64,000 nucleotides of DNA, taken from assembly GCA_002269645.1 (NCBI GenBank), contig NIVC01003072.1, positions 57,336-121,335 of the forward strand, given 5' to 3'. The position numbers and the translations under genes are program-made. Below the pieces are notes generated by a model that worked only from the letters and a program-made list of their open reading frames with translations, was not told the origin of the DNA and ran no database searches. Shown one piece after another: positions 3,904 through 64,000 of this stretch (positions are counted from its first letter, which is position 1; each line of letters begins with the position of its first letter). Origin of the DNA: Macrostomum lignano. Taxonomy: Eukaryota.

Positions 3904-5400
3904 TTACTCAGCTGACTCGGCCGAGCTGCTGCTGCTTAGCGAGGAGTCCGACGTCCAGGCAGCCTCATTGTCGTCATCTTGGGTGGTCGCCGCGTTGTCT
4001 CCGACGCCTGGAAATTCCGTCAGCGTCGCCGTGCCGCCAAACCTCACGGCGGAAACTTTGGCGGCGGCATCGCGACCGCTGTTTCTTGCCTTCTGCTTCG
4101 ACTTTCGCTTTCGTCTGCTAGCGTTTTTTTCGCCTTTGCGTTTCTTAGAATCCGCATCCCGAAGTTGTTCTGGCGAATGCATGGTCTGTAGAACAGCGCG
4201 CAGCAGGCACAGGAACGCTTCGCTGGCGCTCTCCGAGTCTAGCGCCGTTGCCTCGCGCCAAACCAGGCCGTGGCGCCGAGCCAGCGCCAGGCCGGACTGA
4301 GCTCCGGAGGGCGTAGGGAGCTCGCGGCGGTCGAGCTTGTTGCCGATCAGAGCGATGGGGGCGTCGGCCGGTAGTCCGACGCTGTCGCCGTCCTGTGCCG
4401 GGCGCAGTCGCTGCAGCCAGGCCTCGCAGTCGCGGAGGCTGTCCGCGTCAGTGACGTCATAGACCAGCATAGCACACTGGCAGCCGCTGTAGTAGCCCTC
4501 CGAGTTGCTGCGATGGCTGGGAGTAATGGCGGTGGACTTTGTTAGCACCTACCTCACTCCCTGCACCCACCTCACTCTGCACCCACCTCAATCTGCACCC
4601 ACCCCACTTTCCGCACCCGCCTCACTCCCCGCACCCACCTCACTCCCCGCGCCCACCTCACTCTGCACCCACCTCAATCTGCACCCACCCCACTCCCTGC
4701 ACCTACCTTACTCCCTGCGCCCACCTCACTCCCTGCACCTACCTCACTTCCTGCACCCACCTCACTCCCTGCGCCCACCTCACTCCCTGCACCCACCTCA
4801 CTCCCTGCACCCACCCCACTTTCCGCACCCGCCTCACTCCCCGCACCCACCTCACTCCCCGCGCCCACCTCACTCCCCGCACCCACCTCACTCCCCGCGC
4901 CCACCTCACTCTTCGCACCCACCTCACTCCCCGCGCCCACCTCACTCTGCACCCACCTCAATCTGCACCCACCCCACTCCCTGCACCTACCTTACTCCCT
5001 GCGCCCACCTCACTCCCTGCACCTACCTAACTTCCTGCACCCACCTCACTCCCTGCGCCCACCTCACTCCCTGCACCCACCTCACTCCCTGCACCCACCC
5101 CACTTTCCTGCACCCGCCTCACTCCCCGCACCCACCTCACTCCCCGCGCCCACCTCACTCCCCGCGCCCACCTCACTCCACACATCCCTTCGCGCACCAC
5201 CGTGCGAACGTCAAAATCTCCTCACCTCTCCTGACCGGCAGTGTCCCAAATCTGGCATTGGACCGGCACCCCGTCAACCTTGACCAGTCGGCTCTGCAGA
5301 CTCGCGGCCACTGTCGGCGCATACGATTCGTTGAATTGGCCGCCTACAAAGCGAGCCAGAAGGCTTGACTTGCCAACGCCAGCGTTCCCAACAACGATTA
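3904..5400 (-). CDS. Divergent Rab-like GTPase domain 4 (exons 18-19) plus basic and Ser/acidic tail, no CC/CXC
   Basis: [14 protein letters not shown] / PTVAASL / [19 protein letters not shown] / IGNKLD / EATALD; the tail contains [19 protein letters not shown] and ends [10 protein letters not shown]. Confidence 0.88.
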
Positions 5401-8400
5401 CTGCGGGAGTTGATCGGTTTAATCATTGGTAAACATAAAGTTGTTTGGCGCCATCGATTCTTATCGTTTAGTTTGGCGCCATTTGTGTCTAGGTTGACGC
5501 CTTTAGTGTCTAGTTTGGCGCCATTTGTGTCTAGTTTGGCGCCATTTGTGTCTTATTTAAAAGCCCTAAAAATCGCCCAAGATCACCATTGACGAGCACA
5601 GCAGGCCTGTCGGGCACAGACGCAGTCTGGGACTCAATCAACGGCAGCTCCTCCACGCTGGCACCTGGCGGCGCGCTTTGCCGCTGACTGTCAACGGTGA
5701 ATCTGGACAAAACTTTCGAATCGAAATTCGACGAACTCATATCTTTGACACTCGCCAGCATGCTGTCAATCTCTGCTATCCGTATTGACGCGTTGGCCGC
5801 CTTCGTCGCTGTCTCCGCCTTCTGAAGCTTCATCTGGGCGAGGCAGCGACTCTGCAGGCCCCTGAAAGCCTGGCCGACATTCTGTCCGGTGCGGGCGCTG
5901 ACGCCCCAGCACAGCTCGACGCCGTGCGACTTGGCGAACACGTCAGCCTCCTCCTGAGTCACGGCGGCCTCATCCGAGTCGCTCTTGTTGGCCACCAAAG
6001 CCACGGGCGTGGACTCTGGCGCGGAGGCCCGCAGCTCCTGCAGCCAGCGCTCGCAGCTGTCGAAGCTGTCGCGGTTCGAGGCGTCGAAGATCAGCAGGGC
6101 GCCGGCGCAGCCTCGGTAGTAGGCGCTCGTGATGGAGCGGAACCTGCGGATGTCGGGGAGGGGCGAAGGGCGGTCTAAGGGGTGTTATGGTTTAGGTTTT
6201 ATGATCCGGGTGTTATGATCCAGGTGGTACGATCCAGGTGTTATAATCCAAGTGTTATGATCCAGGTGTTATGATCCAGGTGTTATAATCCAGGTGTTAT
6301 AATCCAGGTGTTATGATCCAGGTGTTATGATTCAGATATTATGATCCAAGATTTATAATTTGAGTGTCATGTCATGCTTCCGGTGTTTTAATATAGGTTT
6401 ATGAGCCTAGATCATAAATGGGCAACCCCCCTGATTTACACTGGCCATGTGACTTACTTTTTGACCAAAAATGCGACTTACCTGTGAAAGAAACCCTAGA
6501 GCAACATTAACGCAATTTTGGGTAAACGGCAGGAGTAACCATGACTCTCTTTTAAGGGCTAAATGCCTCGTCATCTAATTAGTACTACGTCTGTATTCTT
6601 TGGGGTGGGCATTTTTGCGACTTACCCCTGGTCCACCACAATTTATGGTGGCCAGATCGGCCAGCAGTTGCGCATGTATGGCCTAGATTCATGATTCAGT
6701 TATTATGATCCAGGTGTTATGGTCCCTGTTGTCTAATGAGTTAGTGATAGTAACTTATGTGTAAATCTAATGGGTTTTATAGCACATAATTTCGTCCAAA
6801 AATAAAGTTGATAAAGGAAACAGCGAGCTATCCGACTTCAACCTCACCTCTGTTGTCCCGCCGTATCCCAAATCTGAGTTTGCACTCGCGACCCGTCAAT
6901 GTCGCTGTTCACCACGCGAAAGTCCACTCCGATGGTGGGCATTGCCTTGAGGCTCTCGTCAAATTCCTGGTCAATAAATCGGCGGACCAGGCAGGACTTG
7001 CCGACGCCGGAGTCTCCGATTAGCACCGCTGCGTGGGAGTGGGCGGCGCGACGTGATGGACAACAAGCATTGTCACACCCACCTCACTCTACACCCACCT
7101 CCGAACCTCACTCCACTCCGCACCCACCTCACTCCGCACTCACCTCATTCCGCACTGACCTCATTCCACACCCACCTCACTACACACCCACCTCACTCCG
7201 CACTCACCCCACTCCACACCCGCTTCACTCCGTATCCACCCCACTCTAAATCCACCCAACTCCGCACCCACCCCACTCCGCACTCACCCCACTCCACACC
7301 CGCTTCACTCCGTATCCACCCCACTCTAAATCCACCCAACTCCGCACCCACCCCACTCCGCACTCACCTCACTCCGCACTCACCTCACTCCGGATCCACC
7401 CCACTCCGCACTCACCTCACTACACACCCACCTCACTCCGCACTCACCTCACTCCGCACTCACCTCACTCCTGATCCACCCCACTCCGCACCCACCTCTC
7501 TCCGCACCCACCTCACTCCGCACTCACCTCACTCCGCACCCACCTCACTCCGCACTCACCTCACTCCGCACCCACCTCACTCCGCACCCACCTCACTCCG
7601 CACCCACCTCACTCCGCACCCACCTCACTCCACACCCGCCGCACTCCGCACCCAGCTCACTCCACACCCACCTCACTCCACACCCGCCGCACTCCGCACC
7701 CAGCTCACTCCGCATATCCATCTCACTTCGCACCCACGTAACAGTCAGATGGTAAAGACAAGGATGCTATATCTCACTTTTTATCACATAGTCAGGAGAG
7801 CGATCATCGTTTAGGTTTGCCTGTCCCACTGCTGCTGGCTTCGAAATGGGAGACTCCTTCGACTGCTTAGTAGATTTACTCGCATTAATGGCCTTCGGAG
7901 CGAAAGCAGCCGATTCGTTTGACTGCTGGGTCTGTGTCGAACTGGGAATCGGTTATAAAGAGAAAATATTTGCGTTGTTATGCGGATGAAGTTGTGTTGC
8001 TATGGGGATGAAATCGTGTTGCTATGTGCTTGAGGTTTTATTGCCATGGGGATGAATTTTTGTTGCTATGGGGGATGAAATCGTGTTGTCATGTGTTTGA
8101 GGTTGTGTTGCGATGGGGATGATGTTGTGTTGCTATGACGATGAGAATGTATAGCTAAAAGGGATTAAATGCTGTTGCAAAGGCCAAACACCAACCCGAA
8201 TTGCTGGCTCTGGCTCTGCAGAACCCGACTCTGCAGGCCCCTGAATGCCTGGCCGACATTCTGTCCGGTGCGAGCGCTGACCCCCCAGCACAGCTCGACG
8301 CCGTGCGACTTGGCAAATTCGTAAGCCTCCTCCTGAGTCACGGCGGCCTCATCCGAGTCGCTCTTGTTGGCCACCAGAACCGCGGCCGTGGAGTCTGGCG

Positions 8401-11400
8401 CGTTGGCCCGCAGCTCCTGCAGCCAGCGCTCGCAGCTATCGAAGCTGTCGCGGTTCGAGGCGTCGAAGATCAGCAGGGCGCCGGCGCAGCCTCGGTAGTA
8501 GGCGCTCGTGATGGAGCGGAACCTGCGGATGTCGGGTAATTTATGGATGGGTTTGGCCCCAGTCTAACAGTAACAGGTGTCTCTGTCTAACAGGTGTGAG
8601 GCCCCAGTCTAACAGGTGTCTCTGTCTAACAGGTGTGAGGCCCCAGTCTAACAGGTGTCTCTGTCTAACAGGTGTGAGGCCACTGTCTAACAGGTGTGAG
8701 GCCTCTGTCTAACAGGTGTGAGGCCTCTGTCTAACAGGTGTGAGGCCTCTGTCTAACAGGTGTGAGGCCTCTGTCTAACAGGTGTGAGGGCCCAGTCTAA
8801 CAAGTGTGAGGCCTCTGTCTAACATATAAGCCTTCTCAGGCTAGCGTAATTCCATCTCAAACTTACCTCTCGGCACCAGCTGTGTCCCAGAACACACTCT
8901 TGACTCGACAGCCATCAATATTGTCTTTCACAGCTCGAAATTCCACTCCAATAGTTTGCGGCATTTCGTTAGTCGAATAAAATTCTTTGTCTGCAAATCG
9001 CTGAAGCAAGCTGGACTTCCCAACACCGGAGTCACCAATTAGAAGAACTGAATGATAGATTGAATGAGCGTAATGCAATAATTCTTTATTTTTACCTTCT
9101 ACAATAAAACAGTTCAATCCTGCTTACCTTTCATCTGATAATCAATATGTTCGTTAGAATTTTCACTTTTCTTAGGCACCAACTGAGGCAATTGTCGCAT
9201 GTCAGTTGACTTCATTGGAGCCTGATTTGAACTCAATCTGTGCATACATGTGCAACCTCCAAAATTCGGTCAGCCGTGCGACTTAGTTTTAACAAAAATG
9301 CGACGTAGTTTTTGGCCAAAAATGCGACTTACATATAAAAAAACCCGAAAGCAAAATTAACGCAACTTTGGGTAAACGGCAGGAGTAACTATGACTGTTT
9401 TATTAAGCTAAAATGCCTCGTCAGCTACTTAGTACTACTCTTCAGGTTATTTTTTGGGTGGGCATTTTTGCGACTTCCTTGATTGGCCGCCAAATCGGTC
9501 GGCCGGATCGGCCGACTCGGCCGACTGTTGCGCATGTATGAATCTGTGGGAAGGCGAAACCCTAAGTTCTTGGTTACCATGCGAGAGTATCTTGTTGCTA
9601 TGCGAGACTAGCGTATTGCTATGCGAGACTAGCGTGTTGCTATGCGAGACTAGCGTGTTGCTATGCGAGACTAGCGTGTTGCTATGCGAGACTAGCGTGT
9701 TGCTACGCGAGACTAGCATGTTGCTATGCGAGACTAGCGTGTTGCTATGCGAGACTAGCGTGTTGCTATGCGAGACTATCGTGTTGCTATGCTTTCTATT
9801 CTGAAACTTTCAGTAGCTCAATAACTAACCCATCAACTTTGCTCTGCAGCACCCGACTCTGCAGGCCCCTGAAAGCCTGGCCGACATTCTGTCCGGTGCG
9901 AGCGCTGACGCCCCAGCACAGCTCGACGCCGTGCGACTTGGCGAACTCGGCCGCTTCCTCCTGAGTCACGGCGGCCTCATCCGAGTCGCTCTTGTTGGCC
10001 ACCAGAACCACGGACATGGACTCTGGCGCGGAAGCCCGCAGCTCCTGCAGCCAGCGCTCGCAGCTATCGAAGCTGTCGCGGTTCGAGGCGTCGAAGACCA
10101 GCAAGGCGCCGGCGCAGCCTCGGTAGTAGGATGATATTATCGTGCGGAATCTGGAGTTTTGTTGAAGTCAGAGGCAAGTGTACATTAGGGGGTAGAGATT
10201 GAATGGGGTTGGTCAGACAGACAAGTGTACATTTGGAAGGGGTAGAGATTGAATGGGATGATAAGAGACAAGTGTACGAGCGTACATTTGGAGGGGGTAG
10301 GAATTGAATGGGATTGGTCAGACAAGTGTACATTAGGGGGTAGAGATTCGGGCTTGATCAGAGGCAAGTGCGCACAAGTAAAAATGCAAGGAATCACCTC
10401 TCTTGTCCAGCGGTGTCCCAGATCTGGCACTTGATGCTTGACCCATCGATTTCATTTTTAACAATTTTGAAGTCCACACCAATTGTTGGGATCGCGTTTT
10501 GACTTTCTTCGAATGAGTTTTCAGCAAATCTGCGCAACAGGCAGGATTTCCCGACTCCGGAATTGCCTATGAGCAGCACTGTGGAATTAAAGATAAACAA
10601 GACGATTTCTTAATATACATGTAAAAAGCCATTTAAGGACAAATATTTTTAATTTAAACTGGAAGAAATCGCACATTTTATCAAGCGTTGCTGTTTTGCT
10701 TCAGCTGCCGTCTCGGATCCGTCAACAGCAGTTCTGGACTCTGGGTTTTGAGCTGCTTTGGCTTCATTTTGTCTGAAAAGAATGTTTGGTAAAGTGAGTT
10801 TTGAATAGAACTACGTGTAGACACGTTCTTAACCGAACCAGACACGTTCTTAACCGAACCAGACACGTTCTTAACCGAACTAGACACGTTCTTAACCGAA
10901 CCAGACACGTTCTTAACCGAACCAGACACGTTCTTAACCGAACTAGACACGTTCTTAACCGAACCAGACACGTTCTTAACCGAACCAGGCACGTTCTTAA
11001 CCGAACCAGACACGTTCTTAACCGAACCAGACACGTTCTAGCGGCATTATACACTTTCACAGAGTTAAAAACACATTTTACCAAAATCAGACCAGGTTAG
11101 AGCTGTTTAGAGCGCGCTCAAACTCACTCAGTTTTGCTGCCTTCAACTCCCTGACCATCTGCCGTGGTGGCAGCGGCAGCGACTGCGGCGGCAGCGACCT
11201 GCCTCACCAGTTCCTTCCTGTCGTCGCCCCAGGCCCGGAATCGCCGAAAGAACTCTTTGTCGGGTCGATCGTGCAAAGCGGCCCAATCCAGGCCCTGAGC
11301 AGACCGCGACATCGGATGTCTGCTCAACCAATCCTGCCGTCTAGCCGTCATATCATCGCTTGTCGTCGCTGCAGCAGCAGCTTCAGCCGAGTCTTTGGAC

Positions 11401-14400
11401 TCGCTTAGCAACTCAATAGCGAGAATGTAGGCCTGATCTAGCCATCGAATATAAGAGCCGTAGCATTCAGTCTGTTCGATGACGTCATTGGCCAAGGCAA
11501 AGGCTCGTTTGGGATTGCCGGCGGCTCGGTGCAGCCTTTAGAGATTAAAAAGTATTAAAATTATTGAATCTCAATTAGATGACCCAAGTTTACCAAAAGA
11601 TTGACAGACTCATGCAGGGATTAACAGACTTAAAATCCCAGGCTCAAAATCTCAGACTCAAAACCTCACAGACTCAAAATCTCACAGACTCAAATCTTAC
11701 AGAATCAAAGTCTCACAGAATCAAAATCTCAAAGGCTCAAATCTCAGAGACTCAAAATCTCAGACTCAAAATCTCAGACTCAAAATCTCACAGACTCAAA
11801 ATCTCACACTCACTCAAAATCTCACACTCAAAATCTCACAGACTCAAAATCACCCAGACTCAAAATCTCACATACTCAAAATCACCCAGACTCAAAATCT
11901 CAAAGACTCAAAATCACCCAGACTCAAAATCTCACCGACTCAAAATCTCAGACTCCAAATCCCAGACTCCAAACCTCACAGACTCAAACTCTCCCAGATT
12001 CAAAATCACCCAGACTCAAAATCTGACAGACTCAAAATCTCACAGACTCAAAATCTCACAGACTCAAAATCTCAGAATAAAAAATCTGACAAACAAAAAA
12101 TGACCCACTTAGCCAACTGGAGTTTAGCTCTGAGCAGCAGGTGCCCTTGAGCTGGCTGGCTGTCAATCAGCGCTTCTAGAGCTTCATCAGCCAGCCGCTC
12201 AGCCTCCGGACGGTACTCCCCCGAAGGCACATCGGCCAGAAGTCTGCCCAGACAGATTCTGGCTTGCACAGCAGCCGGACTGTGCCGACCGATGGTATTC
12301 GAGAAAATTTCAACAGATTTTCTACCGAATTCGATGGCGACTTGAAGAAGTTCAACTGGCAGCATGGCGGGGTTCGCTAGGCGAGCAGCTTGGGCTAAAT
12401 TAGTCATCAAGGAGGCAGCGTTGGGATGCTGAGATGCCGACTCGCCAGAGCTCATTCTGACTGCGGCTAGAGAGGCTTCCACGTGAGCGACAACTTCTTG
12501 GGGCTCCGCAATTGCACCCTGACCGCGGCGGCTGCGATGACGGAGCCGGAGAAGGTGCGCCAACGACAGGTGCGACTGGACTTCGGCTAGTAGCGGGTGC
12601 TGGTAGCCCAGGATGAGCTGAGCGAATAAAGATGCGTTCTGGAATTTGATGGATAGGAAATTTATTAAATTTTATAAGAATGAGGTGAGAATTAGCCTTA
12701 GAAACGGAATTGATTTTTCCTAGAAAGAGAGAATAAGTTTCCTATAGAATGAGATCCAATTTTTACGAAAAGAACGAAGTTTTTTAGCTGATGCGATATT
12801 TTCTAAGAATTAGGTGTAATCTAAAAATTATATTTTGTTAGAACAGAACGACATTGGCGGAATTAGTTGGATTGATGTTAGCATTCGTCAGCAAATGAAA
12901 TCAGTGGTTCCTTTGTTTATTGGTGTATTAGGAACGAATAAAGAAAAAGGGGAAGATAAAGATATGACGATGCGCCTGCCGTATATTTATAGATATGACT
13001 TGGTTTTCGAGAAAGTTCTAAAAATATTTTCTACAGTATAACAAATTTAACGTGCTGATTAATTTACAGATAATTACACAGATATTTACTATGCTATATC
13101 CAGGACGTTTACTATACTATTTACTATAGTACATAATTTAGTATTCATTAATAAATGCTTGAAACTAGCTCGTAGAATATTATTAGGTGAAGATAAACTT
13201 CTGCAAAGATCGCGACATTTGGATTTGTGCATGGTTTCTAGAATGTTAGATTAATACGGTTAATGAAAGTTTCTCGAACGAAGGGCGGTACAATGTCAAA
13301 TCGATTCTTATTTAAAATTTACATCGGACTATCTTAAGATACTGACATGGTTTTTAAACCATGAGATACTTAAGATTGCACCGAATTACTTACTTAAAAG
13401 CTAAAAAAATTACACTAAAATAACTATTACTTAAAAAAACTAAATTTTCTGACTTTGGTTTGTTTCCTTCTTAGAATGACATCGTATAAATTTCGATACA
13501 GTAAAAATAAAATTCGTTTTTCATACATATGAGACCAAATAGTTTTCTAGGGATGTTAGAGAGATATTTCCAAACACTAGAAAATAAAACTTTGCACACC
13601 CGTGACCAAACTTACCACAGCAACTTCGACTCCAAAATCATCTTGACAGAAAGCGTTTGAAAATTTGACAAAGTTTAACAACGACTTGATGTATTCCGGC
13701 GATTCTGTTTTGTAAAATTTGCTGAAATAATAATAAATTAAAATTTATGTTAATATTAAGTCAAGCGGGTATGGAAATTACAAAAAAGTACTTACTAAGC
13801 ATGCTGTACGCAAGCAACAGCTAATTTTTCCGCTTTTCCTTCATCGGAATTTGTTAGGTAAAGTTGCAAAGCGTGGTAGAGAATTTTGAAGACGGCCTCT
13901 GTATCATTAAGATCCACAGTCTAAAATTGATATTTTATAAAATTTTCCAAGTATAAAAGAAATCTTTTCTATATTCGCTCAAGAGACGACTCAATTTATG
14001 TATAATTACCATAATTTAAATTCAATAAAAGTCTTTTTAATTTAAATTTTTACTTACTATTTTTCGTTTTTTTATTATTATATATTAAAAAACGTAAGAA
14101 AAAAATAAATATAACTAAATATTTAATAGAGCTATTGATCATTTAAAACTATAAGTAAAACAAATAATAATGAATCCTGTTTAATAAAAGAAAACTCTGC
14201 AGGCCCGCACTGGCAAATAATTAATCAATTAATATTCTTATGCTTGCATATTCTAAAAAATCTAAAAACAAATTAGCATGCACTCACCGAGATGGCGCTA
14301 CCAAAAGCACCCAACGCGGACGCCAGGCTACCCTGGTCCAGCAGCATCCGACCAATCTGTGCCTGCAGCAGGGCCTGGTTGTCCATCACTTTTTGGCCAA

Positions 14401-17246
14401 ACGACAAGCGGTTGATTCTGGCCGCCGTGGCCTGGGCCGCCTGACTGGCAGCGTCGGCCAGCTGGTAGTCGGCGTTGTTGAGCCTGGCTTCCATCAGCCT
14501 GACGCTGGCGCGGTAGGTTGGCAGCAGGGCTTCCACGCAGTCGCCGCCGAACCTTTTCAAGGAGATTAGTGAGAGTTATATACAGTCGCTTGTGTCACAG
14601 AGACTATGGTGGCTTTGTGTGTCACATGGATGTAATAAAATGGCAACATGGCCATACATGTGCAACACCCTGGCGAGGGGCTTAGCCAAGGTAAGTCACA
14701 AAAATGCCAACCCAAAAATAGACATAGCACTAATTAGGTACTGAGACATTTAGCCTTAAAAATCAAGTCATAGTTACTCCTGCCGTTTACCCAAAATTTT
14801 GTTAATTTTAGCACAAAAGCCCCAAATGAATGTCACCGTCAGTCATAGTCATCGGATGTTGTGATGGAATTATTTTATCACTAGATCGCCGAGCGTTACA
14901 CTAACAACGTGTGAAACAAGTTTTACTTCAGACAGCTCAGATACTTAAGCAGCCTCACCTATTCAGATAGTCGCACAAAGACCCGGCAACTGTCTCGCAC
15001 TCTCTAAACAGATTGACTCCGGCCAGAAAGTCGAACAGTCGGCCGGCCAAATTTGCCAGCTTAGTAGCCGCGTACCGCGACCATCCACCGTCGGTGAAAA
15101 GTCGTCGACCGTCCGGCCCGGTAGATAAGTTAGCAAACGCGGTTGCTATGGCGTTGCCAAGGCTAGGCGCATCGGCTAGTAAGTATTTATAAGCCAGATG
15201 ACGCTTGCGAATGTCGCACAGCAGACGGTGCAGCGGCGAAATGAAGCAGACCAGCATGAGTCGTTCGGGATTGGCCGAACCGGCGGCTTGCAAGGCGAAC
15301 TCGTCGGCGGTTCGCAGTCGCGACAGGCATCGACGCTCGTGCTTGGCCGCGGAGCGACCGCTGCCGCCGTTAGCTGTCCAGGCTTCGTAAGTTCGAGCCA
15401 GGTGCTCGGGCAAGTCCTCCGGTAGGCGACTCAATCGAATAGACGGATTGGCTTCGAGCTGACTCAGTCTGGACTTGGCCGCCGAGCGTAGCGCCTTCCA
15501 ACGCTGACGATGCTCTGCAGACGTCGGATCGTCTTCTTGAGGTTGAATCGGCGGCAGCGGCGGCTGCTGCTGCTGCTGCTCAGAGTGTTGCATTGAGTCT
15601 GTGGAACTCGATTTCAGATTGGCTAGATTTGTGCTGTCTAGAAAGTCAACCAGGATTTGATGATTCCGAGCGGTGGTGGCGTCGACGGTGGATGTTGCCG
15701 ATAGAGACGTCCTGGGTAGGTGACGGGACTTTGCTTCTAGATCGCTTGCTCTAGAGGTTCCTCTGGTGTGGATTAGATCTAGAGGGCGATTCTCTGGTGC
15801 AGATTAGATCTAGAGGGCGATTCTCTGGTGCAGATTAGATCTAGAGGGCGATTCTCTGGTGCAGATTAAATGTAGAGGGCGATTCTCTGGTGCAGATTAA
15901 ATGTAGAGGGCCATTCTCTGGTGTAGATTAGATCTAGAGGGCCATTCTCTGGTGTAGATTAGATCTAGAGGGCCATTCTCTGGTCCAGATTAGATCTAGG
16001 GGGCTGGTTTTCAGAATAGAGATTCGAGGGCGATTCTCAGAACAGAGATTTGAGGGCGATTCTCAGAACAGAGATTTGAGGGCGATTCTCAGAATAGAGA
16101 TTCGAGGGCGATTCTCAGAATAGAGATTCGAGGGCGATTCTCAGAATAGAGATTCGAGGGCGATTCTCAGAATAGAGATTCGAGGGCGATTCTCAGAATA
16201 GAGATTTGAGGGCGATTCTCAGAATAGAGATTCGAAGAACAGAAGGGCGTTCATTCGGCAATACTTGCAGCTCACATTCCCACCTGAACTTGTTGTACCA
16301 CTGGGTGCTGGGATCCTTGCTGGGCAGCATGTCAAGCAGCATTCGCGTCTTCTCAGACCTGTTGGCACCGCGGGACACGAAGCGAACATCGGTGTCGCTG
16401 AGAATACCTTCACGTCTCAGGTAATCAACCACGGGATCTACATTGAGCTGCTGTACAAGGCAGACTCGATTGACGCGAAGTCGAAGAACATTTTGGGCCT
16501 CTCGTTGGCTCACTGAGCTGACGCGGTCTTGCACAGATCTTGATTTGGGTTTTGAATGCAAAAATAGCTTTTTTTCAAAGACTTCTTTCATTTTAATTTT
16601 GATAGCCATGCAAAGCAAAATGTCTAACTTTTAATTTAGTTTTCTATGCTAAATCATAATTAGAAAATTAGCTTTAAGTGCATAATTTAAGAGGAAAAGT
16701 TAGAATTGATTTTCAGTAATTTTTATTCCTAAGAAGGTATGGCAGTTATTGATAAATAGCATAACAACCTAAAGCAAAGATATTAAACAAAATGCTATAA
16801 AAGCATTATTGCAATTATTAAAGCTATTACTGATAAAATAAAAAATCGATATACTATATATATTACCTAGTGACAATTAATATACAATTATATTTTAAAC
16901 CAGTTGACCAAAAGTAATATTAATAAGGTTTTTTGTTTAGCACATGCCATATGAATTCTGATGTTCTGCACTTAATGACTAGACAATGTTAGTAATGTAA
17001 ATTCTTCTTAAATGATGTACGAGCCTTTTAAAAGCAACAGTCGACAAATAAACAAAACATATGTCTAAAAATTAGATGTTTAGTAGAGAGGTAAAATTGA
17101 TCGCATACCTAGATAGATACCTACCGACAAACCATTTTTATTATATGGAGTACACGAATATCTTAAAATGAAAAACATTGAAGATTAGATTACCTCGAAG
17201 AAGCGTTACCAACTTTCTCTTGCAAAGTTGGAAAATTTCTGCTCAT
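3904..17246 (-). CDS. Multi-exon gene: CARD - helical/TPR region - four tandem Rab-like GTPase domains (~1800 aa)
   Basis: Hand-spliced exons (minus strand): 17246-17194, 16538-16284, 15711-14959, 14552-14288, 13920-13796, 13721-13616, 12638-12109, 11535-11128, 10772-10675, 10578-10398, 10150-9830, 9237-9128, 9047-8867, 8522-8196, 7941-7778, 7028-6848, 6143-5587, 5400-5226, 4516-3904. All introns are GT-AG and all phases match. The total is 5403 nt (1800 aa + stop) with no internal stop. Confidence 0.85.
4545..5180. repeat. ~18-bp intronic minisatellite (intron 18)
   Basis: GCACCCACCTCACTCCCT tandem copies; explains the spurious His/Pro-rich ORFs here. Confidence 0.9.
5587..7028 (-). CDS. 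Rab-like GTPase domain 3 (exons 16-17) plus linker
   Basis: [17 protein letters not shown] / PTIGVDF / [19 protein letters not shown] / VANKSD / GVSARTG. Confidence 0.92.
6190..6360. repeat. 14-bp minisatellite
   Basis: CCAGGTGTTATGAT tandem copies. Confidence 0.85.
6413..6680. mobile_element. hAT-type MITE, copy A (268 bp)
   Basis: Imperfect 14-bp TIRs CATAAATGGGCAAC...GTTGCGCATGTATG, flanked by a perfect 8-bp TSD GCCTAGAT (6405-6412, 6681-6688). The internal sequence is homologous to 9243-9540. Confidence 0.85.
7075..7735. repeat. ~16-bp intronic minisatellite related to the 4545-5180 array
   Basis: CGCACCCACCTCACTC core. Confidence 0.9.
8196..9047 (-). CDS. Rab-like GTPase domain 2 (exons 13-14); catalytic Gln replaced by Ala
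   Basis: [17 protein letters not shown] / QTIGVEF / [19 protein letters not shown] / VANKSD / GVSARTG. Confidence 0.92.
8560..8825. repeat. ~22-bp minisatellite
   Basis: TCTAACAGGTGTGAGGCCTCTG tandem copies. Confidence 0.85.
9243..9540. mobile_element. hAT-type MITE, copy B (298 bp), inserted at a splice acceptor
   Basis: TIRs CATACATGTGCAAC / GTTGCGCATGTATG (13/14 match); perfect 8-bp TSD AATCTGTG at 9235-9242 and 9541-9548. Confidence 0.9.
9590..9790. repeat. 21-bp minisatellite
   Basis: GTGTTGCTATGCGAGACTAGC tandem copies. Confidence 0.9.
9830..10578 (-). CDS. Rab-like GTPase domain 1 (exons 10-11)
   Basis: [16 protein letters not shown] / PTIGVDF / [19 protein letters not shown] / VANKSD / GVSARTG. 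Confidence 0.92.
10160..10380. repeat. Degenerate tandem repeat in intron 10
   Basis: Recurring GACAAGTGTACAT...GGGGTAGAGATTGAATGGG. Confidence 0.6.
10810..11040. repeat. 21-bp minisatellite
   Basis: AGACACGTTCTTAACCGAACC, about 10 copies. Confidence 0.9.
11128..14552 (-). CDS. Exons 4-8: TPR-like helical repeats (kinesin-light-chain/TPR_10-12 type)
   Basis: Recurring HP..A....L motifs: [80 protein letters not shown]. The region is Ala/Leu-rich and helical in character. Confidence 0.7.
11640..12075. repeat. ~16-bp minisatellite
   Basis: CAGACTCAAAATCTCA tandem copies. Confidence 0.9.
14653..14815. mobile_element. Truncated third copy of the same hAT MITE family, inverted orientation
   Basis: Starts with TIR CATACATGTGCAAC. 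The internal GTCATAGTTACTCCTGCCGTTTACCCAAAA is the reverse complement of GGGTAAACGGCAGGAGTAAC(C/T)ATGAC in copies A and B. No second TIR seen. Confidence 0.7.
15770..16240. repeat. Compound minisatellite: 31-bp units changing to 26-bp units that share GAGGGCGATTCTC
   Basis: TAGAGGGCGATTCTCTGGTGCAGATTAGATC followed by GAGGGCGATTCTCAGAATAGAGATTC. Confidence 0.85.
16284..16538 (-). CDS. Exon 2: CARD (death-fold) domain, completed by the start of exon 3
   Basis: [67 protein letters not shown]|RTSLSAT...HQILVDFL matches the CARD pattern (LV..L.V..V.DYL...GIL; EK.R.LLD.LP.K). Confidence 0.85.
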
Positions 17247-20593: not shown

Positions 20594-21094
20594 TCAACGG
20601 AAGATCCTCATGCTGGCCGCCAGGCTGCTGAACTCCTCAAAGCTGATCTGACCGTCTCCGTCGGTGTCAGCGGCCGCCATCATCTGGTCGAGGTCGTGCT
20701 CGCTCAGGCCCTCCTCTAACAGGTCGTTCATCACGTGAGCCAGCTCAGCCCTGGAGATGAAGCCGTCCTTGTTTCTGTCCAGCAGCTCAAAAATTCGCTT
20801 CCTCTCGTCGACATCTTCATCTGTCGATGCCGATGTCGACTTGCCGTTGGCTTTCTCGGCGAAGGCGTCCATCATGGCTACGAACTCGGAGAATTCCAAC
20901 CGGCCGTTGGAGTTCTTGTCGAACTCGCGGATTAGCGAGTCGGCCTCAGCTCGGGTCAGGGCCTGCCCGGCAGACCGCATCAGCCTGACGAGTTCGCGAG
21001 CCTCAATCGCTCCGCTGCCATCGACATCGAATTTGTCGAACACTTCGCGTAGAATCTCCTGACTGACGGCCCCAGTGCCGCTCTGGTTGGACAT
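20594..21094 (-). CDS. Intronless calmodulin-like protein, 4 EF-hands (166 aa)
   Basis: EF loops DVDGSGAIEARE, DKNSNGRLEFSE, DRNKDGFISRAE and DTDGDGQISFEE. Confidence 0.93.
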   Translation of the reverse strand: MSNQSGTGAVSQEILREVFDKFDVDGSGAIEARELVRLMRSAGQALTRAEADSLIREFDKNSNGRLEFSEFVAMMDAFAEKANGKSTSASTDEDVDERKRIFELLDRNKDGFISRAELAHVMNDLLEEGLSEHDLDQMMAAADTDGDGQISFEEFSSLAASMRIFR

Positions 21095-27216: not shown

Positions 27217-29118
27217 GTGTGTCTACCGCAACTATCTACCCTACTACAAGTGTGTCTAGTAAGCAAATATTTACCCTACCACAAGTGTATCTACTACAGC
27301 AAATATCTACCCTACTACAAGTGTGTCTACTACAGCAACTATCTACCCTACTACAAGTGTGTCTACTACAGCAACTATCTACCCTACTACAAGTGTGTCT
27401 ACTACAGCAACTATCTACCCTACTACAAGTGTGTCTACTACAGCAACTATCTACCCTACTACAAGTGTGTCTACTACAGCAACTATCTACCCTACTACAA
27501 GTGTGTCTACTACAGCAACTATCTACCCTACTACAAGTGTGTCTACTACAGCAACTATCTACCCTACTACAAGTGTGTCTTCTACAGCAAATATCTACCC
27601 TACTACAAGTGTGTCTACTACAGCAAATATCTACCCTACTACAAGTGTGTCTGCTACAGCAAATATCTACCCTACTACAAGTGTGTCTACTACAGCAAAT
27701 ATCTACCCTACTACAAGTGTATCTACTACAGCAAATATCTACCCTACTACAAGTGTGTCTACTACAGCAACTATCTACCCTACTACAAGTGTGTCTGCTA
27801 CAGCAACTATCTACCCTACTACAAGTGTGTCTTCTACAGCAAATATCTACCCTACTACAAGTGTGTCTACTACAGCAAATATCTACCCTACTACAAGTGT
27901 GTCTACTACAGCAACTATCTACCCTACTACAAGTGTGTCTACTACAGCAACTATCTACCCTACTACAAGTGTATCTACTACAGCAAATATCTACCCTACT
28001 ACAAGTGTGTCTACTACAGCAACTATCTACCCTACTACAAGTGTGTCTACTACAGCAACTATCTACCCTACTACAAGTGTGTCTACTACAGCAAATATCT
28101 ACCCTACTACAAGTGTGTCTACTACAGCAACTATCTACCCTACTACAAGTGTGTCTTCTACAGCAACTATCTACCCTACTACAAGTGTGTCTTCTACAGC
28201 AAATATCTACCCTACTACAAGTGTGTCTACTACAGCAACTATCTACCCTACTACAAGTGTGTCTACTACAGCAAATATCTACCCTACTACAAGTGTGTCT
28301 ACTACAGCAACTATCTACCCTACTACAAGTGTATCTACTACAGCAAATATCTACCCTACTACAAGTGTGTCTACTACAGCAACTATCTACCCTACTACAA
28401 GTGTGTCTACTACAGCAACTATCTACCCTACTACAAGTGTATCTACTACAGCAACTATCTACCCTACTACAAGTGTGTCTACTACAGCAAATATCTACCC
28501 TACTACAAGTGTGTCTACTACAGCAACTATCTACCCTACTACAAGTGTATCTACTACAGCAAATATCTACCCTACTACAAGTGTGTCTACTACAGCAAAT
28601 ATCTACCCTACTACAAGTGTGTCTACTACAGCAACTATCTACCCTACTACAAGTGTGTCTACTACAGCAAATATCTACCCTACTACAAGTGTGTCTACTA
28701 CAGCAACTATCTACCCTACTACAAGTGTATCTACTACAGCAACTATCTACCCTACTACAAGTGTATCTACTACAGCAACTATCTACCCTACTACAAGTGT
28801 ATCTACTACAGCAACTATCTACCCTACTACAAGTGTATCTACTACAGCAAATATCTACCCTACTACAAGTGTATCTACTACAGCAACTATCTACCCTACT
28901 ACAAGTGTATCTTCTACAGCAAATATCTACCCTACTACAAGTGTATCTACTACAGCAACTATCTACCCTACTACAAGTGTATCTACTACAGCAACTATCT
29001 ACCCTACTACAAGTGTATCTACTACAGCAACTATCTACCCTACTACAAGTGTATCTACTACAGCAACTATCTACCCTACTACAAGTGTGTCTGCTACAGC
29101 AACTATCTACCCTACTAA
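27217..29118. repeat. 36-bp minisatellite, ~52 copies
   Basis: GTGTGTCTACTACAGCAACTATCTACCCTACTACAA with three recurring variable sites. Confidence 0.95.
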
Positions 29119-29805
29119 ACACCAAAGGCGATCTTAGCAAGCAGCAGTATCTCGAGTACTATCTCATCTCCGGTACAGCGCCAGTCTCTCTAGTGTAGCA
29201 CTTGCAACGCCAAGCAGCTAAGCAAATATTGCAGCATGGCTCCGCTCTTCTCTCGGGGCCCATGCAGTGCAATATATTCTACTAGAAGAAGCTGCGAGCT
29301 CTTATCTCGTCTGGGAACACGAACAGACGCTAGCAGATGGTAAGCCTGACAACCAGCCCTCCGTGTTGTATGTAGCAAATAATTAATCCCGAAAATCCCA
29401 ACAGGTCTTAGACTCGCTCTTCTGCTGAGCAAATTTTGTCTCAATCTGAATGAATTTGACTGAAGTTGACATCGATTGAACAGTTGAAGAATATAGTTTG
29501 TCAGCTTTCTGCTTTCGCTTGCTATCATTCCCAGCTCACACTGGCAGCGTGTGTGTGCATATTCTTTACTTCAATTCCTGGCAAGACGCATAAAAGAAAG
29601 GCGTTCCATTTTTTGGATTCTTTCTTTTAGAAGCAGCTGCTTTCAGTCACTCTCTCTCTCTCTCTTCCTGTCTCTCCTTTTGTCTTGCTGCTTGTTGCAT
29701 TCCCCAACAGCTAGTGTCACTGTAAACATATTGCTGCAGCTACTCCAGCCCCCCCCCCAGCGACGTGTGTGGCCCTCATAGTCAGCTGACTCAAATGCAC
29801 ACAGG

Positions 29806-33143: not shown

Positions 33144-33605
33144 TCAGGCGTGGAAGATCTTCATCTTGGCAGCCATGTTGTTGAACTCGTCGAAGCTGAT
33201 GGCGCCGTCTTTGTCGGTGTCAGCCTCGTTCAGCATCTGCTGCAGCTGCTCGTCGGAGAGGCCCTCCTTCAGGATGTCGTTCATGACAGCCCGGAGCTCC
33301 TGCAGGGAGATCACGCCGTCCTTGTTCTGGTCCAGCAGCTGGAAGATCTTCTCCTTCTCGGACTGGGGCCGGTGCCCGCCCTTGGACAGGAAGCTGTTCA
33401 TCATGTTGACGAACTCGCCGAATTCCAGGGTGCCGTTCTCGTTCTTGTCGAACTCTTTGATGAGAGCTTCGGCCTCAACTCGGGTGATGGTGTGTCCGGC
33501 GGCGCGGATCAGGTTCACCAGCTCCTTGGCCTCGATGGTGCCATTGCCATTAGCATCGGCGCTGTCGAACACCTTCTTCAGAACTTGTTCGCTCTCGCTG
33601 GCCAT
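33144..33605 (-). CDS. Second intronless calmodulin-like protein, 4 EF-hands (153 aa), paralog of 20594-21094
   Basis: EF loops DANGNGTIEAKE, DKNENGTLEFGE, DQNKDGVISLQE and DTDKDGAISFDE. Shares AG..(L/I)TR.EA..LI.EFDKN, MND.L.EGLS and an M(R/K)IF C-terminus with the other copy. Confidence 0.93.
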   Translation of the reverse strand: MASESEQVLKKVFDSADANGNGTIEAKELVNLIRAAGHTITRVEAEALIKEFDKNENGTLEFGEFVNMMNSFLSKGGHRPQSEKEKIFQLLDQNKDGVISLQELRAVMNDILKEGLSDEQLQQMLNEADTDKDGAISFDEFNNMAAKMKIFHA

Positions 33606-42005: not shown

Positions 42006-54404
<12,399 letters not shown>

Positions 54405-56943: not shown

Positions 56944-57806
56944 GCGTACTCTAGCTGCGTTGAGACTCTCTACGCGTGGTTCGGTATGAGAACAGAATTT
57001 TTTTACATTTGAAACAATGAGCCAAGCGAAAAACTTTCCGTTGTTAGTTTTCCGAACTAAAATAACTTTTTTCTAAATGGAAACCTCATTAAAACAAACA
57101 TACATGCACATACGCTCGCATCAAACCGTAAAAAATAAGTTTTAGCGTCCTTGGACAAAACGCATAGATTCTCTGTTGTTTTGTGATTCATAAAGCCAGA
57201 TAGATGTCATAAAGCCATAATATACGTCGTATTAGGAATAATGCGATTGCAGCTCAATGGCTGTAACCATTACATGTATATACAATTAATAAAACAAACA
57301 TATTTCTTACATGCAGCGTGTAGGTTGGCAAAAGTGGAGGGAGTCTAACGTCAGTAAACCTGACATTGGGAGACCGAATCTCCGACATGACGTCGACTTA
57401 CTGGACTAGTTTCTTTCAAACTCCTAAAGCTGAGTATTTTCTGCCTATCCATATAAATAAATTGGGGATGAAATGAACCACAGCTCAAGGCGACTGCCAC
57501 AGTTTCGGGATAGGCAGAGACGCAGCACTCATTCATTCATCAAGTTCCATCGCGCAGTTTGCGGAGACGTATTGTTACACTATGCGCGGGAAAAGGAAGT
57601 TGAGATGCTCTGCTCTTCTCTTGCTTTTCTTTCTTCTGCTGCAATGCAAATTCTGCATTGAGTCTGCTGTCTGAAATTTGGCAGGTCTGCGAGTGGCAGT
57701 CAATGGCAACCTTTGAGAGGGCTGTGCGATGGAGCTTTTCTCTGGCCAACATATGGGCCATTTAGGTCAGTGAAATACCGTTACTCAAAAAGCAATGTGC
57801 CGCCTA

Positions 57807-58590
<784 letters not shown>

Positions 58591-59009
58591 AATGTATTAA
58601 ATAATCGATTTAATAGTCACTGATAATAGAGTAAATTCATTAAGTATAGAATTATTTCCTAACCGCAGGAATAATGATTTAACAGATTTGTTTTGAAATG
58701 TAGGATTTTAACAGCTATACTTCATAGTGTAATAGATTTTTTAGCTGCAGGTCGCGTGGTCATAGGCAGTGGTCGATCTTGTACCAAATTGAATGAGTTA
58801 GTTTGTGCTATGAGTGCAACAAGTAAAGAAACATATTTCTAGTAAAGAACAAAAAACCCTAGCAAAAACGGATCATGGAATTGAATTTTTCGTTAACAAC
58901 GGAACTGAGGATGTAAGGACAAAATATTTCATTGAACAACTCAAGAGCTTGCGGTACAGATGTTCACGGATTCAACCAGAACAAACTGGAACGCACCAAG
59001 CACTAGCGC

Positions 59010-62000: not shown

Positions 62001-62494
62001 ATGTACCGATGGAAGTTGTGTCAGCTTCTTCATGTACTGATGATATTTGTGTCAGCTTCTTCATGTACCGATGGAAGTTGTGTCAGCTTCTTCATGTACT
62101 GATGATATTTGTGTGTCAGCTTCTTCATGTACTGATGATATTTGTGTTTGTCAGCTTCTTCATGTACTGAAAGTTGATTACCCATGTGTGCAACGGATGC
62201 CGATCGGTGCACGGATCCGCCAGACGTTCACAACGACTGCCGCCATAGCCTTCTTTACAGACGCAGATCGTCTCGGTTTCTCCTTCCGCCTCCGTGCCGT
62301 TCTTTCCAACTTTGGTCAGGCGACTCTCGCAGTACAGTGTGTATCGTGGCGAACAGGGATACTCAGAGGAGTCGCGCGGCCGGTTGCACAGCAGCTGGGG
62401 AACGCAATCGTGAGTGCTTCTCGACCAGTAGTGACCAGCCTTGCATACGCACTCGTATGAATCGGCCCACAAGCCTGACTGGCTGATTGTGCAT
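59010..62494 (-). CDS. 3' exons of a type-I membrane protein with EGF-like repeats, one TSP1 domain, a TM helix and a short tail (5' end beyond the window)
   Basis: Exon ~62494-62182: [11 protein letters not shown]...C...[14 protein letters not shown]. Exon ~60943-60760: GTC...WECVC...DNC...C. Exon ~59430-59010: [12 protein letters not shown] + [15 protein letters not shown]...RSC...C...C + [24 protein letters not shown] + RYRGY...YQQG*. Exact junction phases are unresolved. Confidence 0.75.
59480..60690. repeat. 42-bp intronic minisatellite, ~28 copies
   Basis: TAATGACCACAGAGACACAGGCACCGAGTGCAAAGACACACC. Confidence 0.95.
61035..62170. repeat. 31-bp intronic minisatellite with two interleaved variants
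   Basis: GCTTCTTCATGTAC(CGATGGAAGTT/TGATGATATTT)GTGTC(A/C). Confidence 0.95.
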
Positions 62495-62522
62495 CTGCTC
62501 GGGTGCAAGGTGGATAAAGTGG

Positions 62523-64000
<1,478 letters not shown>

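Follow-up and report, generated by a model that had tools for sequence, protein, structure and literature searches.

A Macrostomum lignano gene that joins a CARD and an APPBP2-like module to four Rab domains

Gene model and reading frame

The DNA analysed here (the window) is a stretch of 64,000 nucleotides that is 100% identical to the last 64 kb of contig NIVC01003072.1 of the flatworm Macrostomum lignano (assembly Mlig_3_7; positions 57336-121335 of the record). On its minus strand lies the gene BOX15_Mlig018981g1 (related UniProt model A0A1I8FWW3), in which GC-rich exons are separated by AT-rich, repeat-filled introns, and whose single reading frame holds a CARD, a module resembling human APPBP2 and four Rab GTPase domains. 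An earlier note on this DNA, made from the sequence alone, had described a single minus-strand open reading frame (ORF) of 19 exons and 18 GT-AG introns. Rebuilding the model from the sequence reproduced that frame exactly: the coding sequence runs from 17246 to 3904 and comprises 5,403 nt, i.e. 1,800 codons followed by TAA, with no internal stop codon and with GT..AG at all 18 introns. The exons and what they encode are given below; structure models are from AlphaFold 2 (AF2), with confidence given as the predicted local distance difference test (pLDDT).

17246-17194, minus strand: exon 1, with the start ATG at 17246-17244; same N-terminus as the RNA-based GenBank protein PAA53536.
16538-16284, minus strand: exon 2; it and the beginning of exon 3 code for the CARD (residues ~29-130).
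15711-14959, 14552-14288 and 13920-13796, minus strand: exons 3, 4 and 5.
13721-13616, 12638-12109 and 11535-11128, minus strand: exons 6, 7 and 8.
11128..15711, minus strand: exons 3-8 and the introns between them; encode a disordered spacer and, after it, the all-helical, APPBP2-like TPR superhelix (residues ~165-823).
11125..11127, minus strand: TGA that would be the stop if intron 8 were retained, after ...GSKTE; it overlaps the donor GA/GTGAGT.
10772-10675, minus strand: exon 9, linker 1; its end, ...KQQRLIK, opens strand 1 of Rab domain 1; no in-frame ATG.
10578-10398 and 10150-9830, minus strand: exons 10 and 11, Rab domain 1, Rab1-like.
9237-9128, minus strand: exon 12, linker 2; its end, ...DYQMK, opens strand 1 of Rab domain 2.
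9047-8867 and 8522-8196, minus strand: exons 13 and 14, Rab domain 2, Rab1-like, with DTAGAE.
7941-7778, minus strand: exon 15, linker 3; ends in ...DYVIK; no in-frame ATG; pLDDT <50 (AF2), predicted disordered.
7028-6848 and 6143-5822, minus strand: exon 16 and the first 322 nt of exon 17, Rab domain 3, Rab1-like, with DTAGQQ.
6143-5587, minus strand: exon 17, the remainder of Rab domain 3 and linker 4.
5587..5821, minus strand: linker 4, the rest of exon 17; a long helical extension, then a disordered stretch to ...PAVLVN.
5400-5226 and 4516-4147, minus strand: exon 18 and the first 370 nt of exon 19, Rab domain 4, Rab11-like, divergent.
4516-3904, minus strand: exon 19, with the stop TAA at 3906-3904.
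3904..4146, minus strand: C-terminal tail, polybasic at first and acidic and Ser-rich towards its end; no cysteine; pLDDT <50 (AF2).

The annotation of Mlig_3_7 rests on RNA-seq together with a de novo transcriptome and used StringTie/TACO; trans-splicing and poly(A) reads defined the gene ends, and TransDecoder called the ORFs (PMC5730564). From this locus it contains PAA53536 (1,063 aa; coding sequence at 17246..9447 of the window), which equals residues 1-1032 of the model, i.e. exons 1-11. From a second locus it contains PAA53531 (1,043 aa), which is the exact translation of a paralogous copy spliced at the junctions of the model from exon 8 to exon 19, the exon 12 junction included. Each of the 18 introns is thus used in some RNA-derived model (introns 1-10 here, introns 8-18 at the paralogous locus), and the exon 8-9 junction, which ties the core to the Rab array, is present in PAA53536, PAA82250 and PAA53531. 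Because PAA53536 and PAA53531 jointly use the junctions of the model, the single frame with CARD, APPBP2-like module and four Rabs is a real fusion and not a row of separate Rab genes. Two UniProt models named 'CARD domain-containing protein' (1,667 and 1,675 aa) also run from the CARD to Rab 4, skipping parts of exons 7-10. Note that we handled the A0A1I8... models of UniProt, which stem from an older M. lignano annotation, as unverified predictions.

The reading frame itself argues in the same direction. The joins that supply the strand just before each P-loop (RLIK/LLLIG, DYQMK/VLLIG, DYVIK/TVLIG and VLVN/VIVVG), which the earlier note had listed, were all recovered. That note had also said that Rab domains 1-3 lack starts of their own; in units 1, 3 and 4 there is indeed no ATG in the open frame before the P-loop. 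Since they have no start codon, these three of the four Rab modules are translatable only within the fusion. There is also no stop after Rab 3; exon 17 stays open for another 78 sense codons and closes with the first strand of domain 4. The claim does not hold as worded for unit 2, where an ATG in frame, at 9245, immediately precedes exon 12. This ATG is no sign of a separate Rab 2 gene, because it lies in a transposable element (described below) and has no counterpart in the paralogs, and we therefore rejected unit 2 as an autonomous Rab gene that starts there.

We also weighed whether four separate tandem Rab genes could have been strung into one ORF by convenient choices of GT and AG. In favour of this, exons 12 and 15 close with DYxxK, as does the first coding exon in ordinary Rab1 genes, both the ATG at 9245 and a read-through tail with a CaaX-like CNSI end are present in unit 2, and the UniProt models of the gene disagree in the region of exons 7-10. 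Against such an artefact stand the RNA-derived PAA53531, which uses exactly the junctions of the model, the transposon origin of the ATG at 9245, and the missing starts of units 1, 3 and 4 and missing stop of unit 3. Moreover, if the M. lignano spliced leader ends in AUG, joining it to exon 9, 12 or 15 would put that AUG out of frame, and only 2, 12 or 18 more codons, respectively, would be read before a stop; with frames that close within 2-18 codons, start donation at the linker exons was, on that premise, rejected. We hold an annotation artefact to be very improbable.

An APPBP2-like core and an array of four Rab domains

The CARD lies at residues 38-106 (PF00619; E-value 2e-10; 40.9 bits versus a cutoff of 23.9 in Pfam). 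In the AF2 model it forms six helices across residues 29-130 with a pLDDT of 72-89, and the closest solved CARDs by profile are those of RAIDD, ICEBERG, cIAP1 and Apaf-1. Where the earlier note had named a CARD, TPR repeats and Rab domains, Pfam confirmed the CARD and four Ras domains. The TPR assignment fell below the threshold on the M. lignano sequence (TPR_12, 19.3 bits versus 30.1), and the region is better called APPBP2-like.

A profile of the family matches human APPBP2 (PDB 8JAL) with an E-value of 7e-48 over APPBP2 residues 40-574. In addition, the AF2 model of the M. lignano core (pLDDT 76; predicted template-modelling score (pTM) 0.70) has APPBP2 as its best fold match, with a Foldseek E-value of 4e-12 and a template-modelling (TM) score of 0.72-0.74; the next-ranked TPR proteins are found at ~3e-5, an E-value ~10^7-fold weaker than that of APPBP2. 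The M. lignano TPR region alone matched nothing in the PDB, so that the link to APPBP2 is seen only via the family profile and the predicted fold. These findings identify the TPR part as a full-length APPBP2-like superhelix, at 17-21% identity to APPBP2.

Human APPBP2 is a receptor of the cullin-RING ligase CRL2, and a pocket formed by its TPR6-11 binds R-x-x-G C-degrons (PMC10614623). When the residues listed in that paper for the degron pocket and the zinc-dependent dimer are traced in the alignment, one of 13 is kept in M. lignano. In the degron pocket only R437 is identical (R651), and Y345, R380, E387, E388, K430, S441, H476, S479, Y483 and Y515 are replaced by S, T, R, L, Q, D, Q, K, A and Q, respectively; of the zinc-dimer residues, C54 lines up with P251 and H89 with D283. 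The profile alignment covers APPBP2 from residue 40 onwards, and the M. lignano helices that precede this point were modelled (H165-246). The core belongs to an APPBP2-like paralogous family and is not a demonstrated C-degron receptor.

This homology also bears on a different reading of the protein, according to which the APPBP2-like module is still a Cullin-2 substrate receptor, and the CARD and Rab modules bring it substrates or are regulated by it, so that the protein would control the turnover of trafficking or death-fold proteins. APPBP2 itself is a CRL2 receptor for R-x-x-G C-degrons (PMC10614623), and the homology, in profile and fold, covers almost its whole length. On the other hand, the remaining 12 of the 13 key residues differ both in M. 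lignano and in its spiralian relatives, identity to APPBP2 is low, and the N-terminal VHL box, through which APPBP2 contacts Elongin BC and Cul2, may or may not be conserved, as the profile alignment starts at residue 40. We think it unlikely that the protein is a ubiquitin-ligase adaptor.

When residues 1-831 were used as the query against 1.84 billion representative proteins, the search returned orthologues of 790-860 aa that carry the CARD and the TPR part and no GTPase. They come from Owenia fusiformis (A0A8S4N315), Lingula anatina (XP_013395164, which is named 'amyloid protein-binding protein 2'), Lottia gigantea (V4AGT2), Babylonia, Physella and Tubulanus. The orthologues are colinear with the M. 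lignano protein over residues ~30-800 (phmmer E-values of 1e-54 to 1e-28; 23-29% identity) and share with it the TPR superhelix as well as the LVxFLDNT and PLPxI motifs after the CARD; invariant columns include N41, Q47, W98, Y99, F102, L123, F126, L127 and T130. Their C-termini coincide with the end of exon 8. The CARD plus APPBP2-like module is therefore an older stand-alone protein of ~830 aa found in annelids, molluscs, brachiopods and nemerteans, to which M. lignano adds a C-terminal Rab array. The earlier note had overlooked the APPBP2 homology, this older protein and a truncating transposon insertion (see below). Our literature searches found no characterisation of the spiralian CARD-APPBP2-like proteins.

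The C-terminal part of the protein contains four Ras-family domains (Pfam E-value 5e-179). Domain 1 matches Rab1a in the PDB with an E-value of 4.6e-47 (chain residues 8-169; phmmer) and domain 4 matches Rab11A with an E-value of 1e-30 (phmmer), the alignments spanning the full G domain of Rab1a and of Rab11A. Domains 1-3 are 76-79% identical to one another and 37-40% identical to domain 4. Domains 1-3 are Rab1-like and domain 4 is Rab11-like. The guanine-nucleotide-binding motifs G1-G5 are intact, as follows.

Domain 1: GNSGVGKS / PTIG / DTAGQE / NKSD / SAR.
Domain 2: GDSGVGKS / QTIG / DTAGAE / NKSD / SAR.
Domain 3: GDSGVGKS / PTIG / DTAGQQ / NKSD / SAR.
Domain 4: GNAGVGKS / PTV / DTAGQE / NKLD / TALDS.

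In domain 2 the catalytic Gln is replaced (DTAGAE). Loss of this Gln in a Rab predicts loss of GTP hydrolysis, and domain 2, which is well folded in the AF2 model (pLDDT ~85-93), is probably hydrolysis-dead. The RabF motifs are present in domains 1-3 (IGVDF/IGVEF, RFRTII/RFRSIT, YYRGC, LVFD/LIFD) and partial in domain 4 (VAASL, SHRSNS, YYSGC, LVYD).

No C-terminal prenylation motif (CC, CXC, CCX.. or CaaX) was found, and there is no Cys in the last ~100 residues. The last cysteine of the protein is within helix 5 of domain 4, and domains 1-3 are internal. This bears out what the earlier note had said of a missing C-terminal CC or CXC, and prenylation is possible for none of the four Rabs. The AF2 model of domains 2-4 consists of three confident G domains with a pTM of 0.37, linkers with a pLDDT <50, one long helix after domain 3 and a disordered tail, which suggests that these domains would be arranged like beads on a string.

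Note that read-through of the exon-14 donor (8165-8195) would give a CaaX-like end, ...GLCNSI followed by a stop, and that GLVSGLCNSI followed by a stop is found in both paralogs. This end may be left over from a Rab that once stood alone and had a prenylated tail, or may belong to an intron-retention isoform.

Origin of the Rab array and its three copies

The TGA at the exon-8 donor (window 11125-11130, ACT GA/GTGAGT) is conserved in all copies of the gene and coincides with the C-terminus of the Rab-less orthologues. Because the orthologues end at exon 8 and the TGA overlaps the donor, we conclude that the Rab array was appended by splicing over an ancestral stop. Retention of intron 8 would give a CARD-TPR protein of ~831 aa resembling the orthologues of other phyla. 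The earlier note had proposed a search of metazoan proteomes for the same domain order; such a search finds the CARD-TPR core in other spiralians and the Rab array on this core only in M. lignano, and on the sequences compared the array appears to be an addition made in the Macrostomum lineage.

Each of Rab 1-3 is encoded by a cassette of a linker exon, an N-half exon and a C-half exon. As linker exons 12 and 15 end in DYxxK, which is the usual start of the first strand in Rab1, each cassette resembles what was once a Rab gene of three exons. The N-half exons (10398-10578, 8867-9047 and 6848-7028) are 67-70% identical in nucleotide sequence, at 46-58% GC, and differ at a proportion of 0.72-0.79 of synonymous sites (pS), i.e. 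these are saturated, and at 0.21-0.29 of nonsynonymous sites (pN). Because pS is saturated while pN is low, Rab 1-3 are old duplicates under purifying selection. The C-half exons (9830-10150, 8196-8522 and 5823-6143) are 90-93% identical at 64-68% GC, a pattern that points to their having been homogenised by exon-limited, possibly GC-biased gene conversion inside one gene.

There are three near-identical loci, each between CFAP90 and a beta-TrCP-like gene; two lie on NIVC01003072.1 in inverted orientation and the third on NIVC01000483.1. The block of CFAP90, the CARD-Rab gene and beta-TrCP occurs twice on NIVC01003072.1 (1-27795 versus 56782-84581, inverted, with 92-100% identity by segment), and this repeat is either a real inverted segmental duplication or assembled homeologous haplotypes. 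The three copies share all 18 GT-AG pairs. Between copies, the ratio of nonsynonymous to synonymous substitution rates (Ka/Ks) is 0.2-0.46 in the CARD-TPR and Rab parts. Relative to a paralog, the exons contain ~1 indel in 5.4 kb and the introns 103 in 7.1 kb (14.5 events per kb). The 606 nt of linker coding sequence contain none, where ~9 would be expected at the intron rate, a contrast that is inflated by the intronic tandem repeats.

Both paralogs carry frame-breaking indels. One has lost 1 nt in exon 7, where G5 has become G4 (L002 8480-9008), and the other has lost 1 nt beside GGGG in exon 11 (L003 16833-17152) and 4 nt, GACG, in exon 16 (L003 20147-20323). These indels may be assembly errors or real decay; two of the three are in or next to G runs and look like typical assembly errors. 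The protein models of the paralogs in GenBank are partial because of these indels in the assembled copies.

The copy in the window is distinguished by a miniature inverted-repeat transposable element (MITE) in intron 11, with the following features.

9243..9540, minus strand: hAT-like MITE of 298 bp, with 14-bp terminal inverted repeats CATACATGCGCAAC / GTTGCACATGTATG.
9548-9541 and 9242-9235: 8-bp target-site duplication CACAGATT flanking the MITE.
9447..9543, minus strand: alternative coding segment of PAA53536, with the acceptor AG at 9545-9544, the stop TAA at 9449-9447 and AATAAA at 9404-9399.

Intron 11 is 592 nt long here and 139 nt in the paralogs, the extra length being additional copies of a 21-nt repeat plus the 298-bp element. 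Because neither paralog has the MITE, its insertion is recent. It inserted at the exon-12 acceptor, so that CACAG/ATT is now present twice. The upstream acceptor (9545-9544) kept the original polypyrimidine tract, with pyrimidines at 14 of 20 positions; the downstream acceptor (9239-9238), which the earlier note had chosen, has 9 of 20 and is the weakest in the gene. PAA53536 takes the upstream acceptor, reads 31 codons into the MITE and stops at its TAA, giving a CARD-TPR-Rab1 protein of 1,063 aa, which is probably the main product of this allele. A four-Rab product requires the weak downstream acceptor here, or stems from the MITE-free paralogs. Thus, the fusion put forward in the earlier note stands as the architecture of the gene, and the splice it had assumed at exon 12 is not the one used by the annotated transcript of this locus. 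Copies related to this ~300-bp MITE family are also found at 6447-6623 (intron 16) and 14687-14809 (intron 3).

The truncation and the frameshifts could be taken to mean that the gene is a young, decaying chimera, in which read-through splicing from a CARD-TPR gene into a downstream Rab array is tolerated and has no selected function, and the copies are becoming pseudogenes. Such a chimera would be consistent with the MITE-induced truncation here and the frameshifts in both other copies, with a stop placed exactly at the exon-8 donor so that an unspliced, Rab-less product is possible, with a Ka/Ks of ~1 in the linker exons and with the lack of any orthologue of the fusion. It accords poorly with the 1,800-codon frame, which is intact in this copy, and with Rab modules that lack start codons in units 1, 3 and 4, and so are translated only within the fusion, and that have been under purifying selection long enough for synonymous saturation; moreover, two of the three frameshifts fall in or beside G runs, as in assembly error. 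To this reading we give little credence.

Almost every larger intron contains a tandem-repeat array with a period of 14-31 nt and 8-41 copies, and differences in intron length between the paralogs are mostly differences in tandem-repeat copy number. A related CACCCACCTCACTCC repeat unit is common to introns 15 and 18. The arrays are located as follows.

16011-16235, 15761-16004, 11624-12074, 10819-11039 and 9579-9792: intronic tandem-repeat arrays.
8581-8824, 7076-7737, 6181-6348 and 4545-5179: intronic tandem-repeat arrays, continued.

Elsewhere in the window, two intronless ORFs on the minus strand, at 20594-21094 (166 aa) and 33144-33605 (153 aa), encode calmodulin-like proteins with four EF-hands; they are paralogs ~12.5 kb apart (Pfam EF-hand_7, E-value ~5e-34). 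Kilobase-scale micro- and minisatellite arrays give long spurious ORFs at 27217-29198, 50914-52157, 57713-58592, 59471-60707 and 62125-63988, which is consistent with the reported 15% content of simple and tandem repeats in the M. lignano genome. Rfam had no match in the window.

Related architectures and a possible function

Several known systems share parts of this architecture. Human APPBP2 (PAT1) has the same fold over essentially the whole core, and differs in having neither a CARD nor Rab domains and in the degron-pocket and zinc-dimer residues that M. lignano does not keep. The large Rabs Rab44, Rab45/RASEF and Rab46/CRACR2A have a single, prenylatable C-terminal Rab domain preceded by EF-hand and coiled-coil parts. 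The M. lignano protein is likewise large and multidomain with its Rab part at the C-terminus, but this part comprises four Rabs, is preceded by a CARD and TPR part and has no cysteine tail. With four Rabs, no Pfam match to an EF-hand and no prenylation motif, membership of the large Rabs was rejected.

The ROCO protein DAPK1 combines a Ras-like Roc domain with a death domain, and the likeness consists in a Ras-superfamily G domain inside a large signalling protein that has a death-fold domain. The Pfam Roc model does score on all four G domains. The G domains here are nevertheless of true Rab type, the death-fold domain is an N-terminal CARD, and there is neither a COR domain nor a kinase. No COR domain is among the best 25 of the 50 Pfam families matched, and the G domains are followed by segments of 37, 55 and 78 aa (linkers of 33-78 aa) that are predicted to be disordered or a single helix; ROCO membership was rejected because no COR follows the G domains.

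Scaffolds of the Apaf-1/NLR type likewise unite a CARD with a nucleoside triphosphate (NTP)-binding switch and a region of helices or repeats that binds a ligand, as does the protein described here. The NTPase of M. lignano is a Rab rather than a STAND NB-ARC or NACHT domain, the order is CARD-repeats-NTPase, and there is no sign of oligomerisation. NACHT, nSTAND and AAA models match only as P-loop fragments of 20 residues (for example residues 1069-1088 versus positions 3-22 of 167), and with no NACHT or NB-ARC domain, membership of this group was also rejected.

Known proteins with more than one G domain are Miro (two), EngA/Der (two) and GIMAP8 (three). Among predicted proteins, tandem Ras domains occur in the bdelloid rotifers Rotaria socialis (six in 991 aa) and R. 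sordida (four to five), the clam Solemya velum and the ciliate Stentor (three each) and a metagenomic contig (seven). Like the M. lignano array, these contain several small-GTPase domains, and most of the rotifer, metagenomic and Logan examples have no C-terminal prenylation motif; unlike it, they come without a CARD or TPR part, and they are mostly unverified predictions. Because they are only 29-37% identical to the M. lignano array, they arose independently.

The earlier note had called the architecture unprecedented. We found no paper on the M. lignano gene, on a CARD/Rab architecture, on tandem Rabs or on APPBP2 combined with a CARD, which agrees with that claim. Uncharacterised UniProt and GenBank entries for the sequence do exist, and three to seven tandem Ras domains are predicted elsewhere, which limits it. 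The sequence is thus already public as uncharacterised entries, and what is new is its reading, as a variant assembled from known parts and confined, among public proteins, to one lineage.

Taken together, our findings are best explained by a real gene that joins a CARD, an APPBP2-like module and four Rabs, that is present here as a MITE-truncated copy and whose product would be an anchorless docking scaffold; we judge this explanation as a whole to be probable, if only somewhat so. For the function of the protein we offer a more tentative proposal, possible rather than probable, which is drawn from the identity of the domains: a soluble scaffold that couples CARD signalling to the machinery of Rab1 and Rab11. 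The protein would be soluble and built like beads on a string. Its CARD would recruit a CARD partner, e.g. an initiator caspase or an adaptor, and its TPR superhelix would bind a peptide ligand or cargo. The Rab modules would bind GTP and, because they have no lipid anchoring and no GDI/REP cycling, might act as built-in, nucleotide-dependent docking sites for effectors or regulators of Rab1 and Rab11. CARD signalling could thereby be tied to endoplasmic reticulum-Golgi and recycling-endosome machinery. The functional reading of the earlier note, a scaffold linking membrane traffic to apoptosis or innate immunity and possibly a Rab decoy or sensor, is compatible with this predicted anatomy.

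Several points weigh against this explanation. In addition to the single key APPBP2 residue that is kept and the frame-breaking indels in both paralogs, the RNA support is second-hand, through the GenBank annotation, and the annotation at this exact locus stops the coding sequence after Rab 1, with nothing annotated over Rab 2-4. There is no deep conservation: a homologue search found no protein outside M. lignano with the Rab array on this core. A word-indexed homologue search missed A0A1I8FWW3 and its cluster for exact-substring queries, and a query centred on the junctions brought up no M. lignano protein, so that silence from this tool is no proof of absence. The linker exons, with a Ka/Ks of ~1 and only 15 differences, are uninformative as to selection, and all of the functional steps are derived from the identity of the domains.

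The same anatomy would fit an integrated decoy or guard, in which the anchorless Rab1- and Rab11-like modules are baits for pathogen effectors, and their modification would release or cluster the CARD and so trigger caspase or immune signalling, by analogy with the decoy domains integrated into plant NLRs. Rab1 is frequently targeted by bacterial effectors. The Rab modules keep RabF surface motifs yet, having no prenylation site, cannot be expected to act as membrane Rabs; they form a multivalent array on flexible linkers and are joined to a death-fold signalling domain. Against a role as bait, there is no sign of diversifying selection (Ka/Ks is 0.2-0.46 when copies are compared and much less than 1 when domains are), an NLR-type NTPase oligomerisation module is not present, and the fusion is limited to one lineage. 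A decoy or guard seems improbable, and the more specific idea of an animal counterpart of the plant 'integrated decoy', its Rab array spliced onto an older CARD-APPBP2-like protein in one flatworm lineage, slightly more so.

As a finding, this is a curiosity of one lineage and does not settle a question of long standing. The locus does display a stepwise route to a new architecture, in which a stop was bypassed by an overlapping donor, cassettes were duplicated, exons were homogenised, and a transposon duplicated an acceptor and truncated an allele. The uncharacterised CARD-APPBP2-like family across Spiralia, for its part, links the fold of a C-degron receptor to death-fold signalling. Rabs are usually seen as single-domain, lipid-anchored switches, and the gene amounts to a natural experiment on the Rab fold off the membrane, with four internal or cysteine-less modules in a soluble death-fold protein. 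As M. lignano is open to transgenesis and RNA interference, the questions that this raises are testable.

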